From contig JALMLS010000315.1 of assembly GCA_038496445.1 (NCBI GenBank), positions 1 through 64,000 of the forward strand: DNA of 64,000 bases, written 5' to 3'. The notes under the pieces are model-generated. The model did not search any database and was not told the origin of the DNA. It was given only the letters and a program-made list of their open reading frames with translations. Below, piece by piece: positions 26,055 to 62,512 of the stretch (positions are counted from its first letter, which is position 1; each line of letters starts with the position of its first letter). A program made the position numbers and the translations under genes. The stretch is from Trichosphaerium sp. ATCC 40318. Lineage: Eukaryota; Protista; Tubulinea.

Positions 26055-26288
26055 CCCACAAACTGTTTTACTTCATGTACGTGGCAATTGTAAATTGTTC
26101 AACACGTGTGGTGTAAAACCCGTCTATGCTTCACTGACGAGGCTTCCAAATGACTTGGTGAGCGATGAGCGATGCTTGATGTGCTATTTGGCAAACACAA
26201 CGTACACTTGCTTAAAACAACGCAGAGAAAACCAGAAATTTACAATTTTTTAAACTTCGCTTTGCCAACACGCTTCAGTTTAAAACAA

Positions 26289-28498
26289 ATGTCAGACGAC
26301 GACAGAGACCGCTCTAGCAGAAAGCGTAGGCGGACACGCGATAGTGACCGTGATCGCCGCGATACCAGAGACAGGGATAGTAGAAGTAGTCGTGATGATG
26401 ATAAGGACAGAGAACACAGGCATAAACGGCACAAGAGCAGTAGACATAAAAGTAGTAGAAGCCATAGAAGCTCTAGAGATAGTAGAGATAGCAGAGATGA
26501 TAGGGACTACGAAAAGGACGTAAAACGTGAAACAAAAGTTAAAAAAGAGCCAAAAGTTGAAGATATGTTCAAAAACGATGATGAGGAGGTTCCACAACAA
26601 GCCTCCAGTATAGAGAGCAAGAAAGCGAAGCTAGCAGCAATCAGAAAAAAATTGGCTGACAAGAACGCTCTACTCGAGAAGCTACGGTTAAAAAAGCAAG
26701 CAGCACAAGCAAAAACCGCCGCTGCAGCAAAAGCACAAGCTTCTGGGCCAAGACCGCTTTTACTTGACGACGAAGGCAGGGAAGTAGATGAGCATGGTAA
26801 CGTTATTCAAAGCCGCACTACTATAGTGTCAACACTGAAGGCTAATCAAAGAAATGACATTCGTGATGGACAAAAAAAGACAAGAGGTCGTGTATACGAT
26901 CCAAGAATGAAAATGCCAGCGGCAGAGCGTAAAAAGCGTTCATTTAATTTCATAGAGCCAGGAAAATACGTCCGTATTTCAAAGAGGATAAGATGGTTCC
27001 AACAACAAGTACAACGGGATAATGCTGCCGACACTGCAGGTAACATTTTTGATTATAATTATGTTGACGATACTAACCTCTTACTAGGTGATGGAGTGCA
27101 AGCTGCCGCAGTAAACCTGGCTGAAGCTGAACTACAGATGAAAATGAAAAGAAAAGGAGAAATGCTTGCACGTGAAATACCGGCAATAGAATGGTGGGAT
27201 CGTCCTTTTACGAAGCAAGGAAGTTATGAATCAGGACCTGATTATACTACATTGAATGTTTATGTTGAGCATCCTATTCAACTCAAGCCTGCAGCTGATC
27301 CTGGCGCACCTGCTCCACAACCTTTAAAACTTACAAAAGTTGAACAAAAGAAGTTGAGAAAGAGGATTCGTCAAGAGAAACAGAAAGAAAAATATGACAG
27401 GTTTATTCTTGGTTTAGATGAGGCTCCTGAAGCGAAGGTTAAGATTAAGAATATGATGCGTGTTTATGGTTCAGAGGCAGTTCAAGATCCAACACAGATT
27501 GAAGCAAAAGTACGACAAGAGATGATGGAACGTCAGCGCCGTCATGAGGAGAGAAATCAAGCTAGGAAACTAACACCTGAAGAGAGATCCGCTAAGGTAA
27601 TTTTTTTTTTGTCTTTTCTTTCTTTTTGTTTATTTGAGCTTATGATACCTTTAGAAACGTAGGAAAATGCGTGAGGATACCTCTCTAAAGACTAAGGTAG
27701 CTGTATATAGAGTTGGTAAGATGCACTTGGCCGATCCAAGAAAGAAATTTAAAATTGACAAAAATGCACAACAGTTGAACCTTTCTGGCTGTTGTCTTCT
27801 GTGTGGTACAAGTGAATTTGCTGTTGTCATTGTAGAAGGTGGACCTAAAGGTCTAAGGAAGTATAAGGTAATAACAAGCTCACAAATAGGAAAAAAGATG
27901 AAATTTTTGTTTTCTCATTTTTTGGAGATATTGAATTCTTACCTTCTGTATTAGGGTCTATTGCTACGTAGAATGAAGTGGCTGGAAAGACAAGATGAAG
28001 ATACAGACTTCCCTGAAGGAACAGAGACTTGTGCATTGGCATGGGAGGTGCGTGATATTTTTTTTTTGAATGGTTTTTGATTTTCTATCATTGTCTGCAA
28101 ACGCCTTCAAAACGTAGTGTATAAAACCAGTTTATTGTTTGCGTACTGCGTACAAACTTTTAAACGTGATAGCTGCAAGTACAGAAAAAACAAAAAAATT
28201 AGAATTTCAAACCTCAATTCGACCTTTCTTTTGCTACGCCTTCGTTTTATGCGTCACAGGCGATTTTAGTACTTTAATTTCTAAATAAGTAATTTGTGCA
28301 GTACGATCTATAAACTGTACCAAATATGACGTGTATGTTATTGTTTACTAATGGCGTTTACCTTAGGGAGAAACGTTGAAGGCCGCTTTTAGAAATTTTG
28401 CATTTTATGCCTGTGATACAGAATTGGAGGCTAGAAAGTACCTTGAAGATAGAGGCGTTGTACAGTATTTTGATATGTGCAAGAACCACAACAATTAA
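26289..28498 (+). CDS. PRPF3: U4/U6 snRNP protein Prp3
   Basis: IPAIEWWD, YVEHPIQL, KVKIKNMMRVYGSEAVQDPTQIEAKVRQEM, NAQQLNLSG, VIVEGGPKGLRKYK; RS/RD-rich N-terminus. Confidence 0.95.
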
Positions 28499-30640: not shown

Positions 30641-30713
30641 GCTCTAATAGTACAACGGCAGTATGACAAGTTGGCGGAACTTGCAGATCCGGGTTCGATT
30701 CCCGGTTGGGGCA
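30641..30713 (+). tRNA. tRNA-like Pol III gene with atypical anticodon arm (identity unassignable)
   Basis: Acceptor stem GCTCTAA/TTGGGGC+A, D arm GTAC-AACGGCA-GTAT, T arm CCGGG-TTCGATT-CCCGG, and a T-run terminator at 30719-30723. Confidence 0.8.
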
Positions 30714-30978: not shown

Positions 30979-31874
30979 ATGGATGTATCTACGTTACAAC
31001 ATTGCATAGCCAAACCTAAGAAACAACAAACGTATTTTGCCCCTACCTCTGGTAGTTTAACTATGAAACGTAAACGTGATTCATCTGACGCTACAACACC
31101 AACTGAATCTGGTGGCTCTGTGAAAAAGCAACGTACAACCACTCAAATTCCACGCTCTGTGATAGTATTGGATGTAACGAATGGTTCTATGCAAGCTTTA
31201 GGTTCGTGTACATAATGTAAACGCTTCATTTGAATTTCTGTAAACGATTTTGCTTAACGTTACTCCTTTACCTTTAAACAGCACCGCTTAGGCTAAACTC
31301 ATGTTATTTAGTTACATACAGCCCACACTTTCTATCTGGTGAAGAAATCTCTTGTCTTTTTCAAGAACTGAACTCTCATACAGACGACTTTAATCAAGAC
31401 GTGTTTAAGCTCTATGGTAAAGAGTATAGATCACCAAGGCTCGTTGGAGCATTCGGAGATAGAAAAGGCATCTCTTATACATACTCTGGTAACACTAGAA
31501 CAACAGTAGGGCAATTCACACCGACAATGCTTGCTGTTAAGAAAAGGATTGAGGAAATCGTAGGACACCCTCTTAATTATGTCCTAGTGAACTGGTACAG
31601 GGATGGTAAGGATCATATAACATGGCATAATGATAAAGAGAAAGATTTAGTTACAGGATCAGCTATTGCTTCTATCAGTGTTGGTGCTGTCCGAGATTTT
31701 AAGTTAAGAGTGGAGAAGACTAAAAAAGTGACTACTGTAAAGTTAGGATCTGGAAGTTTATTACTGATGCTTAAGGATACTCAAAAACTATGTAAGCATA
31801 GCTTACCTAAACGTGTACGACTTAAAGATGTAAGGTTCAATCTTACATTCAGGTACATGGCGCTACCAAATTGA
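30979..31874 (+). CDS. ALKBH2/3-like DNA/RNA repair dioxygenase (start may be 31063)
   Basis: PRLVGAFG, YTYSG, NYVLVNWYRDGKDHITWHNDKE, IASISVGAVRDF, KHSLPKR, RFNLTFR. Confidence 0.92.
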
Positions 31875-53090: not shown

Positions 53091-53580
53091 TTAATAATTT
53101 GCTTGTTTACCATTGACGAAATTACACTGCTTCCACAATTGGCCATTATAATACCATTGTTTGTATTCTCCATCTTTCTCACCATTTACAAAACTATATT
53201 GGTTACGTAATTGGCACCATCTCAATTCTCCTTCAAGTTTACCATTGATGAAATTACACTGCATCTGCAATTGGCCATTGATAGACCATTGTTTGCATTC
53301 TCCTTCTTTTCTACCTCTTACATAATTACACTGCTCTTCCAATTGTCCATTGTCATACCATTTCTTGCATTCTCCATGTTGTACACCGTGTTTCCAGTAG
53401 GTTTGCTCTGTGAGAATGTTATTGATTCGAAACTGCCATTTTCCATGCTTGTTCATCTCACTATCAAACCTTGTGGTCATTGCCGCCTGTTTCGAAGTAA
53501 GTGGCCAAATTAAATACAAATGAGTCCAAATCGATAATATCAAGTTGAATCTCAATTGGAAGGTTTAATAGGGACGATTT
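53091..53580 (-). pseudogene. Intronless MORN-variant (MORN_2/YwqK-like) repeat gene with F-box-like N-terminus, frameshifted
   Basis: Repeats WYDNGQLEEQCNYVRGRKEGEC. Upstream LLNLPIEIQLDIID lies in another frame and has no in-frame ATG. Confidence 0.7.
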
Positions 53581-55029
53581 TTGTAAGCAGTTCACACTTT
53601 CAAACAATTTCTAGGACACCTCAAAAATGTTATTTATGTCCAATCTTTTAGTATACTTCAGAACACATATGTGTCTATAATATATATTAACCAGAACTTG
53701 CTGGTAATTAATAGTGTGCTTCAATCAACTATTTCATTGAAAATAAAACTGAGTTATTTCTGCTTGGGTTCATATTCTTATCCTCTAGCACCACCATGTT
53801 TTGCAGGTAACTCTTTTACATTATGATGATTAAGGATTACATTCTTTCGTTTAATGCATTTTTTATCACTTTCAGTGTCCCACATAAAGCTATCGTCACC
53901 TGTCTCTAGACCTGATTGTTGTCAATTGGTCGTTCTTTTGAACAATCATTCCAACCCACAAAAACCTTTTTCAAATCATTTCTTTTGGCGGCAGGTGCTC
54001 AATAAATCATGGTGTACGTACGCGCAGTTATAGCGTATTTGATAATTTTGGTATCAAAATACAGAGGTTTCTTTTTTGAAGAAGTTGATGAACATAATAT
54101 TTACATGAAAATGTCAAAAAACTCACTCTTGCTTGGGTACTTTATTGCATCAGATGGCCAAAAAGCTTGATGTAGTTATTTTTTACCACTATAGGAGTTT
54201 TAGAGACAGAACTTAGTTTTTGAATGGAGATACGTTAGGATTTACCAAAAACAGGTTCAAAGAAACTGTGTCACTACACTCCATCAACTATTGCTATAAA
54301 TTACACTGTGTAATACCACACATATTGACTATCACTATGAAAACTGTGGGATGGTCAATTAGCTCTTGAGGTATTTAAATCCAAAAATCGCTTAATGGTC
54401 CATTAGTACAGAATATTGGAATTTATCAATTACACAATGCTCGACAAGCTTAAAACTAATCTCAATACATGACAAATAGCATTAGGCGACACTTCAGTAA
54501 TTTAAACACTTGTCAAAGCTTGTGTAATTGTTAATTTTGGGAACTCGCTTTTTCTTCATTCTTTACGCCACAAACTAACGTTTTCAGCGTTTTCCGTGCG
54601 ATAAACGTCATTTGCAGGTACTTTATAGAAACGCCCTCGTATTTTGGTAGCATATGCTCTGTTTTTGCCAATAACCCGTGAATTACATTCCAAGCACTTT
54701 ATATGGTGACACAATGCTTGAATCATCTGTTTGTGGGCAGTGAAGCTCAGTTGGTGCTTTTTTAGTTAAGTCAAAACAAAAACCACAAACAAACTCGTAA
54801 AATAGTAAATAATTTATTTTACACTTAGATCTTAACAATGGAGCTAGCCATTCTAGGAGTACCTTCACATACGCAAAATCATTAATATGAGAGGTGTGAA
54901 CCGCATACAAAAATCGTCCCTAGATGGCAATCGTCTGATTGCGCATAAAATCTCTACGTATTGGTTGTTAGGTACTTCATCTTGTGATTAAAAAGATTCG
55001 GTGATACCTTGGTTACAATAGATTTGGGA

Positions 55030-55478: not shown

Positions 55479-56342
55479 CTAAACTACAGCCTTCTTTTTG
55501 TGTAGCCTGTACAATTTTCTGTACTGTGATAATACTAATTTAGTATGCCTACCTCCAGTAATATACCCAGCAGGCCCTACGAATATCCCTGGAATGGCTA
55601 ATCCGAAGAAACTAACCAATATTACAACTGAAAAAAACCCAGCATGATGTCTGATTAATCCCAATGTGTCATACTTAGGCCATCTTGTCTCCCCGTTTGG
55701 CCAGGTCCTCTCTGATTTGTAGAATATTCTTGAAGCATGCTCACCATTCATTAGACTAAACAAGAAGAAAGTTGCAGGTATGATAGAATGCATAGCAACC
55801 TTAAAACCAATAGTACATCCAAAACTAAATGATGATTTTCTAAACTGAGATAGAGTAACATGTGACCAGTGTTGGCTTCCAATAGAGCCGCTTATACCAG
55901 CTACGCCTAATACACATGCTCCCATATAAAGATTGTACTCCCAGTTAGGCATATAACGTAGCAGTTGCATGCTTTTTGGCTCGCTACCTGAATTATCATA
56001 CAAATCAATGTCATTCACACCCCTAGGTAAAATAATACTTGTTGTATCGGCATTGTACCATTCTGGTACGTATCCTTGCCACCATCCTACATTGTTTGTA
56101 CTTATTGCGTATATTTTTAGGTATTTTTCTTCTTGTCTTTTAGCTACTGTGTATACGTCATCTTTAAATAGTATAGTATCAGATTCTATAGGTACGACTT
56201 CTTTTTCTGAAAAAGGTGCATAGTTAAAGTAGCAGAGTATAGCGGCCATACTTATGCCACTAGCGCACGCATAAATAGTAAAAGGCCGAGACTTGGAAAT
56301 TGCTTGTTTTAAAAGCTGGGCGCGTTTTGCGTTGTTAATCAT
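55479..56342 (-). CDS. Intronless hypothetical membrane protein (~287 aa)
   Basis: Long ORF with 4-5 hydrophobic segments and an Arg/Lys-rich N-terminus; no recognised domain. Confidence 0.65.
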   Translation of the reverse strand: MINNAKRAQLLKQAISKSRPFTIYACASGISMAAILCYFNYAPFSEKEVVPIESDTILFKDDVYTVAKRQEEKYLKIYAISTNNVGWWQGYVPEWYNADTTSIILPRGVNDIDLYDNSGSEPKSMQLLRYMPNWEYNLYMGACVLGVAGISGSIGSQHWSHVTLSQFRKSSFSFGCTIGFKVAMHSIIPATFFLFSLMNGEHASRIFYKSERTWPNGETRWPKYDTLGLIRHHAGFFSVVILVSFFGLAIPGIFVGPAGYITGGRHTKLVLSQYRKLYRLHKKKAVV

Positions 56343-56681
56343 GATGATTGTTGTGTTAATAGAACACTTTTGACTTTTTCGCTGCTTTTTCCTTCGCAAA
56401 AAAGTGGTCTTTGAAAGTCCGTTTCAGTCAAGTTGTAACGACAGGTTTATTTTTTGTTTTTTTTTTTGCTATTCATTTGACATTTTTTTTTGTAGATCTA
56501 CCTACATTTGACAGTCTTTTGGAAGTCTGATCAACCAACAGTTATTTCGTTTATTTTGTTCCTTAAAAGTGCTCTAACGATAAGGTAGGTAAAAAGATTC
56601 TAAAAAGTAACTTGACTAAAAGAAGGCGTTGTACTCAACAAATATAGAAATGTTTAATGATTTGATAGAAGTTGTTTGACT

Positions 56682-58313
56682 CTAAACAATTTTTTTCTTC
56701 CTATAGAACAACAAACATGCTCGGTCTGTAACTAGTTCAGATGCTTCTATTTTAGATACTCTACTATCATCAAAATGATACCACCTGTTATCATCAGAGT
56801 TACGACAAGCAGCTGTGGAGTGCATCTTAGAGTACTACAGGAGATTAAGTAAGTTGCTTTGTAAAGTAATTCTCAGAATAAAATCCGGAGATTTAAACGT
56901 ACTACAATTCCATAGAGCTCATAAACAAAGTTCTCTTCAGGTTGTATTGGTTTTTTAATAAAAGGAGCCATGTCAAGGGTATCAATAGGGAATGTTATGA
57001 CCTTGGATAGAGAACCTTGGTCCCTTCTATTAAAAAATATTACAAATACCTTGAGACTCATTGTTAGCTGGTAGAAACGAAAGGTGGTTTAGGTACCTCA
57101 GGTAATGTCCAAATATCTCGTCCAACCGTCGCACGTACATGGTTTTTACAGTGCCTGCAGTACCTAAGCAAAATAAAAAGTCAAAAAAAAACAAGTACAA
57201 GTTCAATTGAACTTACCATTCGTCACCCTCTATTAATTTAGATTTTTTCGAGAAATCTTTCATGCAATCTTGAAGAGTAGCAGCTTCCATACCAAATATT
57301 TTATATTCGAGCACGACAAACATATCAAACGCTCTTGACATGTTCTTTTAAAAAAATTTAATAAGGGAAACAGGAAAAATATTGCAGTACCCTTACCTTA
57401 CAATCAGGGCAACAAATTTGAGTCCTGGTCTGCCCGTACATTATATCTGTAATATAAGAATCATTGCGAAGAAAAAATGCTCGTCTATAAGCAGCAGCAA
57501 GGTCGACATCATCAGGTATTGACCTACAATTGTTTAGAAAGATAAATAAGAAAAAAACACGTGTCCGTGGTCTAAACACTCACTGGTCTATCTCTGTGTA
57601 AGGTTTGTTGATTATTCTGTTCACATCCTCATGTACCGCATCTACGATAAAGCTTAAGACCTCTTCTGGACACTTGTGATGATATCCAGCCAGCCTCGGA
57701 CAGTGCTTTTCAATCGTCTTCTTGGCCTCTCTAGGCTGTACTGGGTCACGTCCGCTTGACCACAACGCCTAAGGAATCCACTATAAGCTTCTTTGATGCC
57801 GTACATACGGCCTCTCGGGCGTGATGTTGCTTGCAAGACAGCAAAGAAACTGAAGTCTTGATGAATAATCGTACCTTGACAATTTTGGCAAAAGAGTCTG
57901 CAATTTCACCATTGCAACCAAGAGGATTTGATTTATTAATTTGAGCTTTATACGCATCGCTTAAAAAAGGCGCTGCTATTTTAGGGTCACTAACGAGACA
58001 TTGAAAAACGGAATTTAAGCTGCTTGTATTGCCTGAGAACCAAATTGTTAATGAATGACTTTAAACGGTAATTCGAGGTACCCAGATTCATAATACCACG
58101 TAGGCGAGTGCGTTTGGCTTGTATTTCCTTGTCTTGCTTAATCATTGCCTCCCAAGTTTTAGAAACGCTGCAACATGGTAATAAATCCTTATAAGATAGG
58201 CATTGAAGCACTGCTAGAGTTATTTCAATTGGTAAAATTTCGTCTGTGGAGTTATAAGCTTACATATGCCCTAGTTCTACCTGATAGATACCTGTTTCCG
58301 CTGTAGTAGACAT
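56682..58313 (-). CDS. F-box fused to catalytically inactive USP (pseudo-deubiquitinase)
   Basis: F-box ILPIEITLAVLQCLSYKDLLPCCSVSKTW. USP boxes GIMNLGNTSSLNSVFQCL, INKSNPLGCNGEIA, VHEDVNRI, CPDC/CRHC, YELYGIV, WYHFDDSRVS, CLLFY. Confidence 0.88.
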
Positions 58314-58523
58314 TTTTTACGCCTGAGTGCTGTCGAGTATGTTTTTGGGATTGAATTGTCAGTTCATGAGAGTCCGTAGTTCAAAGAACCTTTCAGTTTT
58401 TCTGACAGGGCACAACAAGAACCCTGATTACAAACAACAAAAAAGTTGACACGTGTCATTTCTCAAATAAGTAAGTGACAAAAATAAACGCTATGGCTGT
58501 TTATTGTAACGTGCAAGCTCTCT

Positions 58524-58910
58524 TTCAATACTTGCTCGGTATTAACCATTAAGAGCATTGTTTGAATGTACCTTAGCTATCTTACACAAGTGGTCGCTTG
58601 TCTGTACTGTACACGAGCTCTACGTGACCCTTGTGTAAGGAAGTCACTTCAGTGAAGCGTACTGTCCTTGATGATGATCACGTCATCAAGGCCTTTCACC
58701 TTACGGCCAAGGTGCACTTTGCGGCCTTTGCGGCCCGGGAACATACATGTAACTTGAATAAACTTAATAAAGATAACTTTAACAAGAGTTACAACGTTTA
58801 TTATCTAACAAGTAAAGAAGAACCCTGGTCGGGTACGTACCTCTTTACACCTTGACCCCTTTGTTACGTTTCATATTGAATGACTGGCACTAGTTTTAAT
58901 CTTTGAGCAA
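58524..58910 (+). ncRNA. Candidate structured non-coding RNA
   Basis: Several strong helices whose non-Watson-Crick pairs are G-U on the + strand; no credible ORF. Confidence 0.5.
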
Positions 58911-61112: not shown

Positions 61113-62123
61113 TCAGTTGGGTACAGCCTTTGCCACCTTAGGTTTCTTCGCATCTGATCTTTCCAACTCATCATTTACATCTTGCTCTGTTTGTCGTTTC
61201 CTCTTAGATCCATGAACCAACAACAACTTTCTCCTTTCTACCCACTCATCTTCCCAATCCTGTGGAGGAACACTATATGCTGTCGCTGCCAAGTGCTCAA
61301 ATATAACGAAAAGCAACTCAGGTGGTAAGCTCGAAAAGAAATTGTCACCGTGGCGATCAGCATTAGCTATCATCAAGATTGTAAAAACACGTAATCTAAA
61401 TCCAAGCGGAAAATAGCAATGTATAGCTTTTTTCCATCTAGGCACCAACAGCTGGCCCTGGTCATAAGCAGTTGTACCGTCACTAGAGGCTTCAATACCT
61501 CTAAGCCATTTTTCATCAGTCATCGTAACCTTGTATGTCGCATTAACCACCTCAACGTTGTCCCAGCTTAAGTCAGGGTTATCAGCTCTTAATCTACCCA
61601 TTTCTCTTTCATTAACACCTGACTTGCTTATCCTCTCCACGTGATGTATATACCGATAAGTGTGCTGTTTTAAATCATAGCAAATATTATCAACGCTTAT
61701 ATTATAAGAAATAGGAGGGTAGTTGTTTTGTTTAGCAAAAACAATCCAACGTCTTTGTTCATCTCTTTTTTCTTCAGCTACTTTTTCCAAATAGCGTGCC
61801 TTAACTTCTTCTGAAGCATTTGCCCATTCTTCGAATATTTGAGATGAGTCCATATCCGGTGTTTTATCCTTTAAATCAGCCGCGAAGTCGCTTATATCTT
61901 CGCCGTTTGTCTTGAAAGAGCCGTACTTGCGTACAGGTTTTTTAACGCCCGTCCTGTACGCTACCTTGAATGGCAGTGTATCCCAGAGTATCATTAAAGC
62001 GATTTCGTAAAGATCATCCGGTAATTCGACAGAAGAAGCGAATGTCGGTTCAAGCCAAAGGTAGAAGGTTCTACCGTTGATGTTAGACACTCTGTACCTA
62101 TAGACATCACTAGAACCGCCCAT
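61113..62123 (-). CDS. Intronless protein with HMG-box-like segment and C-terminal F-box-like motif
   Basis: DLKDKTPDM..EEWANASEEVKARYLEKVAEEK (HMG helices 2-3 like); W...IHCYFPLGFRLRVFTILM...FSSLPPELLFVIFEHLA; NLS-like KKPK. Confidence 0.7.
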   Translation of the reverse strand: MGGSSDVYRYRVSNINGRTFYLWLEPTFASSVELPDDLYEIALMILWDTLPFKVAYRTGVKKPVRKYGSFKTNGEDISDFAADLKDKTPDMDSSQIFEEWANASEEVKARYLEKVAEEKRDEQRRWIVFAKQNNYPPISYNISVDNICYDLKQHTYRYIHHVERISKSGVNEREMGRLRADNPDLSWDNVEVVNATYKVTMTDEKWLRGIEASSDGTTAYDQGQLLVPRWKKAIHCYFPLGFRLRVFTILMIANADRHGDNFFSSLPPELLFVIFEHLAATAYSVPPQDWEDEWVERRKLLLVHGSKRKRQTEQDVNDELERSDAKKPKVAKAVPN

Positions 62124-62512
62124 CTTGTCAATTGTCAACTGAACGAATGGATTTGCCAAGAATAATTGAATGTGGTTGACCCTCCTCGATTTGCTATTAT
62201 CAACGGCCACACTGACAGTACTTTGTACAACTATTTTACGGGAGCCCTTAACCTTGAAGCAGCAATATTGTAATTACCAAGCAAAAAAATGGATTATCTG
62301 TTTTGTCGATAATCAGTGTCAATTCCGTAGGCTTGTTGTTCTTCTTCAGTGTTATAAGGTTAAAGTACAACAAAGTACCGAGATAAGGTGACTGATAACA
62401 ACAATGGAGGTTCTGCTAATTGTGATAGTATGAATAGTTGGTAAATTTCTGAAAGAAAAAAACGACTTAGCAGTGTTACACAAACTTATACAAACCAATT
62501 GTAAGTACACCG

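Follow-up and report, generated by a model that had tools for sequence, protein, structure and literature searches.

A transcribed F-box protein with a predicted pseudo-deubiquitinase domain in Trichosphaerium, a probable SCF-type receptor or scaffold

Results

A spliced gene joins an F-box to a USP fold

A transcribed gene in a 64,000-nucleotide stretch of DNA from Trichosphaerium sp. ATCC 40318 (contig JALMLS010000315.1, hereafter the window) encodes a 382-residue F-box protein whose sole other domain is predicted to be a pseudo-deubiquitinase. Judged from its sequence, the protein is probably an SCF-type receptor or scaffold. The F-box is the handle of SCF ubiquitin ligases, and the fusion joins two known kinds of protein, the F-box receptor and the pseudo-deubiquitinase. 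The initial annotation of this DNA had proposed the fusion and knew of no characterized family built this way. The papers searched on F-box and USP proteins likewise yielded no described protein or characterized family with this architecture, and an F-box was found in 0 of the 79 nearest USP relatives.

The gene model was obtained by reading the minus strand in three frames and joining the open stretches at GT..AG sites, starting at the ATG at 58313. An in-frame TAA lies 6 nt upstream of this ATG and thus fixes the amino terminus. The joined coding sequence is 1149 nt (382 codons), with GT..AG ends at 8 of 8 introns. Four public sequencing runs matched the gene, and their contigs were aligned to positions 56300–58700; X2, X3, and X4 are three runs from one sample, and X1 carries a different organism label. 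The features of the gene are as follows.

56682–58313, minus strand: F-box/pseudo-USP coding region; nine exons, 382 amino acids, TAG stop codon at 56682–56684
58292–58313, minus strand: exon 1; M1 to the first base of D8, with the junction 58292/58243 present in X2
58082–58243, minus strand: exon 2; F-box and linker, up to the first base of G62
58131–58238, minus strand: F-box proper; I10–D45, LPIEI...VSKTW, above the curated cutoffs of PF12937 and PF00646
57875–58032, minus strand: exon 3; Cys box, then the thumb helices, aligned without gaps to USP4/USP15
58019–58024, minus strand: codons AGC AGC for Ser65 and Ser66, in exon 3
57584–57768, minus strand: exon 4; region of the switching loop ('QQD' box) and HEDVNR helix, aligned to USP4/USP15
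57670–57681, minus strand: H144-H145-K146-C147, in place of USP15 Q377-Q378-Q379-D380
57397–57523, minus strand: exon 5; ends with the first zinc CxxC (C214, C217)
57217–57344, minus strand: exon 6; site of the large UBL insert in the USP4/11/15 clade, an insert that is absent here
57097–57163, minus strand: exon 7; second zinc CxxC (C263, C266)
56903–57049, minus strand: exon 8; FFNRR in place of HLKRF, and a shortened BL1
56682–56834, minus strand: exon 9; truncated BL2, His box YSKMHSTA, WYHFDD, C-terminal strand, and stop codon

Intron-free contigs of 1220 nt (X2), 1149 nt (X3), and 959 nt (X4) jointly confirm 8 of 8 junctions, with GT..AG ends on the gene strand, and the transcript extends at least from 56638 to 58341. 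Run X1 contributes short pieces of exons 3 and 4, both spliced and unspliced. The initial annotation had described the frame and the introns as intact, and this is borne out by the 382-codon open reading frame, the eight GT–AG introns, and the spliced contigs. The junction that it had predicted ahead of the nucleophile position, G/GC AAT ACA AGC, is confirmed by transcripts at 58082/58032. These data show that the gene is transcribed, with spliced contigs in three runs.

An acceptor for exon 8 at the upstream AG at 57067 was ruled out by the transcripts, which place the start of this exon at 57049. The intron before exon 8 is 57050–57096 (47 nt), with its acceptor 18 nt downstream of 57067; compared with the 57067 acceptor, the protein has six residues fewer, and the normal USP spacing after the LP motif is regained.

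The window and the transcript contigs differ at two coding positions, 56999 and 57938, and both differences are synonymous. The contigs are identical to the genome across the Ser65 and Ser66 codons, which read AGC in both. Two minor splice forms are present in X4. One uses a donor 6 nt downstream (window positions 57391–57396) and adds two residues in frame; the other skips 112 nt from inside exon 7 to inside exon 8 (57026–57139) and shifts the frame, which makes part of the transcripts non-productive. Codon usage, when tested, did not clearly separate the reading frame.

The amino terminus is a canonical F-box

Domain scans were run exon by exon rather than on the joined protein. Exon 2 scored 36.4 bits against PF12937 (F-box-like; cutoff 24.3) and 32.7 bits against PF00646 (F-box; cutoff 20.5), and the F-box named in the initial annotation thus scores above the cutoff of both profiles. 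The solved F-boxes of FBXW8, KDM2B, Cdc4, and Skp2 are weak matches to this exon. A canonical F-box directly before a compact USP domain had been claimed, and one spliced mRNA does encode both: the USP core is preceded by only 56 residues, and these hold the F-box.

A loose-pattern search of the window found no F-box besides the one in this gene. The neighboring gene at 53091–53607 (minus strand) has the N-terminal stretch LNLPIEIQLDII, which resembles the F-box start LPIEITLAVL; it gives a weak PRANC match (E = 0.09), and clear MORN_2 repeats (55 bits) follow the F-box-like start.

The USP core is closest to the USP4/11/15/Ubp12 type

The USP profile PF00443 matched colinearly on exons 3, 4, and 9 (profile positions 8–55, 59–108, and 214–254) with scores of 13.5, 21.1, and 30.0 bits, which upholds the assignment of a USP domain. 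A local phmmer comparison of the spliced model with retrieved proteins scored up to 215 bits against a DUSP-USP protein. The best-scoring proteins are 1100–1700-residue DUSP-plus-UCH proteins of the USP4/11/15/Ubp12 type, with 33–36% identity. USP15 and USP4 lead the solved structures matched by exons 3, 4, and 9; USP8, USP11, and USP2 come next. Exon 3 aligns without gaps to USP4 (2y6e) and USP15 with E about 1e-9, exon 4 aligns to the same two proteins with E between 7e-10 and 5e-9, and exon 9 aligns to USP15 with E of 9e-8. The relatives in this clade align as two blocks with 300–500 residues between them (the UBL insert), and the present protein is continuous at residues 231–239. No exon of the gene matched a DUSP domain. 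By these alignments, the USP core is a descendant of the USP4/11/15/Ubp12 type.

Conservation was scored on an alignment of 16 full catalytic cores, of which 15 were counted and the divergent P0049 was left out. A column was called strongly conserved when at least 80% of the relatives agree, and 92 columns qualified. The consensus residue is retained at 55 of the 92. The retained positions include the flanks of the Cys box (G57, N60, G62, N63, T64, N68, S69, and Q72), the HED.N helix, the four zinc cysteines, His337, T339, A340, W350, F353, D355, and the C-terminal LFY. The zinc-finger cysteines (C214, C217, C263, and C266) and the WYHFDD motif had been reported as intact, and the spliced model agrees.

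The nucleophile and the loops of the cleft are rewritten

The position of the nucleophile is occupied by Ser65, and 15 of 15 aligned relatives have Cys there. Ser65 stands at the position of USP15 C298, and Ser66 replaces a conserved Phe/Tyr. The annotated Cys box GNTSSLNS, in place of GNTCFMNS, aligns without gaps to USP4 and USP15, and the transcripts encode Ser (AGC) rather than Cys at the nucleophile position. His337 and Asp354/Asp355 align with USP15 H891 and D908/D909. The USP15 triad consists of C298, H891, and D908/D909, and C298S is a catalytic-dead mutant (PMC13582858). As predicted from this alignment, the F-box protein is the natural equivalent of the engineered dead mutant USP15 C298S.

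The switching loop GYQQQD has become GYHHKC, with H145 for Q378 and K146 for Q379; Glu150, the counterpart of USP15 E383, is retained. The initial annotation gave the QQD motif as HHK. The motif is indeed altered, but its register was one position off: in the gapless USP4/USP15 alignment HHK pairs with QQQ and Cys147 with Asp, so the canonical QQD corresponds to H145-K146-C147. In exon 8 the HLKRF motif has become FFNRR, and the loop from this motif to the FP motif (BL1) has 10 residues versus 15. Within BL1, R292 replaces USP15 F838 and Q294 replaces Y840. The stretch from the LYAV strand to the catalytic His (BL2) has 5 residues versus 10, M336 directly precedes H337, and the GGG is lost. 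In the His box GHY has become MHS, so that the Tyr after the catalytic His is Ser; alignment to the relatives supports the annotated reading YSKMHSTA without glycines before the His. Aligning the protein independently to metagenomic USPs gave both 5-residue gaps again. Across 79 relatives, conservation at the His-x-Gly and Gly-His-Tyr positions is 90% or higher, and the H-x-G...GGHY context is lost here. Five cleft motifs make up 31 of the 92 strongly conserved columns and contain 13 of the 26 radical changes (odds ratio 2.7, one-sided p = 0.035), a clustering that is only an indication because the motifs were picked after the data were seen.

The 5-residue deletion in BL2 coincides exactly with the exon 8/9 junction (between V332 and Y333; intron 56835–56902). 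If the AG 18 nt before the exon 8 acceptor were used, six in-frame residues would be added. Shifts of exon boundaries may have contributed to the reshaping of the loops.

The ubiquitin-tail groove is predicted to be dismantled

The USP15 residues at the altered positions have assigned roles in holding ubiquitin. Q378 helps to coordinate the ubiquitin C terminus, the switching-loop residue Q379 touches R74 of ubiquitin, and E383 forms a pair with R72 (PMC13582858). L71 of ubiquitin is gripped by the BL1 residues F838 and Y840, and mutation of the latter to Ala (Y840A) reduces activity drastically (PMC13582858). The BL2 residues M887-G-G-G890 form hydrogen bonds to the main chain of ubiquitin R74–G76 (PMC13582858). 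According to the alignment, nearly every USP15 contact to the tail of ubiquitin is altered or deleted in the F-box protein, and basic residues stand where the arginines of ubiquitin would lie. With Q378/Q379, F838, Y840, and the BL2 GGG changed or deleted, canonical binding of the ubiquitin tail is doubtful.

These contacts bear on the possibility of a ubiquitin-directed SCF, in which the dead USP would still bind ubiquitin in the manner of a Cys-to-Ser trap and the ligase would extend or edit chains on ubiquitinated proteins in an E4-like way. The zinc-ribbon fingers, which hold the body of ubiquitin in USP15, are retained, as is Glu150 with its potential partner R72. However, none of the elements that clamp ubiquitin residues 70–76 (Q378, Q379, F838, Y840, and the BL2 GGG) survives unchanged, ubiquitin Arg72/Arg74 would be confronted with Lys146 and Arg292, and in USP15 the Y840A change by itself is enough to cut activity drastically. 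We regard this reading as rather unlikely. The initial annotation had inferred an SCF receptor that uses a dead USP as bait for ubiquitinated substrates, USP partners, or USP-targeting pathogen effectors; its F-box and its missing Cys stand, the gene is expressed, and the canonical capture of ubiquitin is the part that the altered tail contacts put in doubt.

Relatives in sequence databases

A search with exon 9 against 1.84 billion representative proteins returned no self-match and no near match. The top-scoring exon 9 matches were concatenated multi-copy USP models, and the best single stretches came from ordinary USPs about 50–56% identical. JGI metagenome contigs gave nine loci, all of them ordinary USP4/15-like sequences with the Cys, LKRF, and GGGHY wherever these are covered. 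A tblastn search of the window found no paralogs. No relative of the gene was found among viral contigs; together with the eight spliceosomal introns, this makes a recent viral origin unlikely.

An independent gauge of sampling is available in the same window. An intronless open reading frame at 26172–27662 (plus strand; 496 residues) encodes PRP3 (PF08572, 190 bits) and is 36–40% identical to the nearest of 5.8 billion proteins. The identity of the F-box/USP protein to its nearest homologues (33–36%) is similar. Because PRP3 is only 36–40% identical to anything, the lineage is poorly sampled; the missing orthologs are thus a matter of sampling and are not evidence that the F-box/USP gene is unique.

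Other features of the window

A 48-nt stretch at 56495–56542 lies between the 3' end of the F-box/USP gene and the next gene. It occurs inside contigs of all four runs, one of them 972 nt long, and the flanks of these contigs match nothing in 56300–58700 or in the rest of the window. Candidate explanations are a short dispersed repeat and a small exon that also belongs to a transcript from another place. The open reading frame at 55479–56399 (minus strand; 306 residues) adjoins the F-box/USP gene directly downstream; neither it nor the one at 61113–62210 (minus strand; 365 residues) has a Pfam match. A 2OG-Fe(II) oxygenase domain (PF13532, 88.7 bits) is encoded at 31401–31874 (plus strand). 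The only tRNA of the window is a tRNA-Arg with anticodon GCG at 30641–30713 (plus strand; ARAGORN; Rfam tRNA 46.8 bits). This anticodon in tRNA-Arg is, to our knowledge, unusual for a eukaryotic nuclear genome.

Discussion

The loss of both the catalytic Cys and the grip on the ubiquitin tail makes the USP domain most likely a binding module rather than an enzyme. In the proposed arrangement, the F-box would dock the protein on Skp1-Cul1-Rbx1, or place it in a Skp1 dimer, and the inert USP fold would act as receptor or scaffold, offering a surface through which a bound partner reaches the ligase. With its groove for the LRLRGG tail dismantled and richer in basic residues (H144, H145, K146, R291, R292, and K335), the fold probably does not hold its partner in the way a USP holds a normal substrate. 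One candidate partner is ubiquitin or a ubiquitin-like protein, whose globular body the fingers would hold; another is a former partner of the ancestral enzyme. The USP fold might also be a reader for a non-standard ligand, such as the ubiquitin body or an acidic-tailed ubiquitin-like protein or peptide, and would then aim the SCF at modified proteins. We consider this more specific version doubtful. If true, the protein would be a genetically fused 'reader-writer' of the ubiquitin code made from an eraser fold.

The signs of constraint on the gene are an open reading frame intact over nine exons, the 55 of 92 conserved columns, four of four zinc cysteines, and an identity to the nearest homologues close to that of PRP3; the two synonymous sites (2 of 2) are a weak sign. 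The opposite view is that the gene is a decaying lineage-specific fusion, in which an F-box exon landed on a drifting USP duplicate that is transcribed and functionless. The databases searched contain no relatives, radical substitutions are many, and one run (X4) contains the frameshifting splice variant, all of which would fit decay. However, although the changes went deep enough to rewrite four motifs, they left 382 codons and 16 splice sites undamaged, the structural core and zinc ligands persist, and the only two variable sites are both synonymous. Transcripts are also found in three runs of one sample and, in part, under a second organism label. On balance, decay is an unlikely account of the gene.

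An active hydrolase on the SCF, in which Ser65, His337, and Asp354/355 would form a triad of the serine type and the F-box would tether a deubiquitinase to the ligase to shield its adaptors, much as Ubp12/USP15 does through the COP9 signalosome (CSN), is attractive because these parent-clade enzymes act with the CSN on cullin ligases, because the His and both Asp residues are retained, and because some pseudo-deubiquitinases proved active (PMC10919355), as did USP53/54 (PMC12037411), but it is very unlikely given that the same substitution in USP15, C298S, is catalytic-dead, that the substrate-tail groove and the BL2 glycines are gone, and that the Tyr after the His is Ser.

The F-box/pseudo-USP protein can be placed among known systems from four sides. 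USP15, USP4, USP11, and Ubp12/UspA are its best matches over the whole catalytic core at the identity given above, and they share with it the flanks of the Cys box, the HEDxNR helix, two CxxC zinc pairs, the catalytic His, and the FDD pair. They differ in carrying a DUSP, a UBL, and a UBL insert within the core where the present protein has an F-box, and in lacking its changes of Cys to Ser, QQQD to HHKC, and GHY to MHS and its shortening of BL1 and BL2 by 5 residues each.

The pseudo-deubiquitinases USP39/Sad1 and PAN2/USP52 (formerly also USP53/54) are alike in having a USP fold without the canonical catalytic residues. USP39/Sad1 and PAN2/USP52 work within the spliceosome or the PAN2-PAN3 deadenylase, where they are accompanied by ZnF-UBP or WD40/exonuclease partners. 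We know of no F-box in USP39/Sad1, PAN2/USP52, or USP53/54. The present protein has no specific sequence relationship to this group, and its nearest relatives are instead active USP4/15-type enzymes. The USP-family pseudo-deubiquitinases are regarded as scaffolds or binding modules (PMC10919355), the kind of role that we favor for the F-box protein. Scaffolds and allosteric partners are familiar roles of pseudo-deubiquitinases.

F-box proteins that serve as interchangeable SCF receptors are alike in having an N-terminal canonical F-box followed directly by one protein-interaction domain. This partner domain is usually a WD40, LRR, or Kelch domain or the like. In the present protein, by contrast, a USP-derived domain takes the partner position. 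A physical link between the two worlds has a precedent: published work describes a USP4/15-type deubiquitinase (Ubp12/USP15) joined to cullin ligases through the COP9 signalosome (Zhou 2003 and Wee 2005 in PMC2266742; PMC6627422). In both cases a USP4/15-type domain is physically brought to an SCF ligase, as far as the F-box here predicts it; in the CSN partnership the link is non-covalent and the deubiquitinase is active, whereas here the link is a gene fusion and the deubiquitinase appears disabled.

The weight of these findings is that of one gene in one unsampled lineage. Within that scope, the gene is a natural experiment on what becomes of a USP core once the demands of catalysis and tail binding are lifted. 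What has stayed here is the core together with the zinc fingers and the His/Asp pair, and what has been rewritten is the nucleophile, the switching loop, BL1, and BL2. If the natural fusion works as proposed, the USP fold, which serves to remove ubiquitin, would be recruitable as the recognition module of a machine that adds it.
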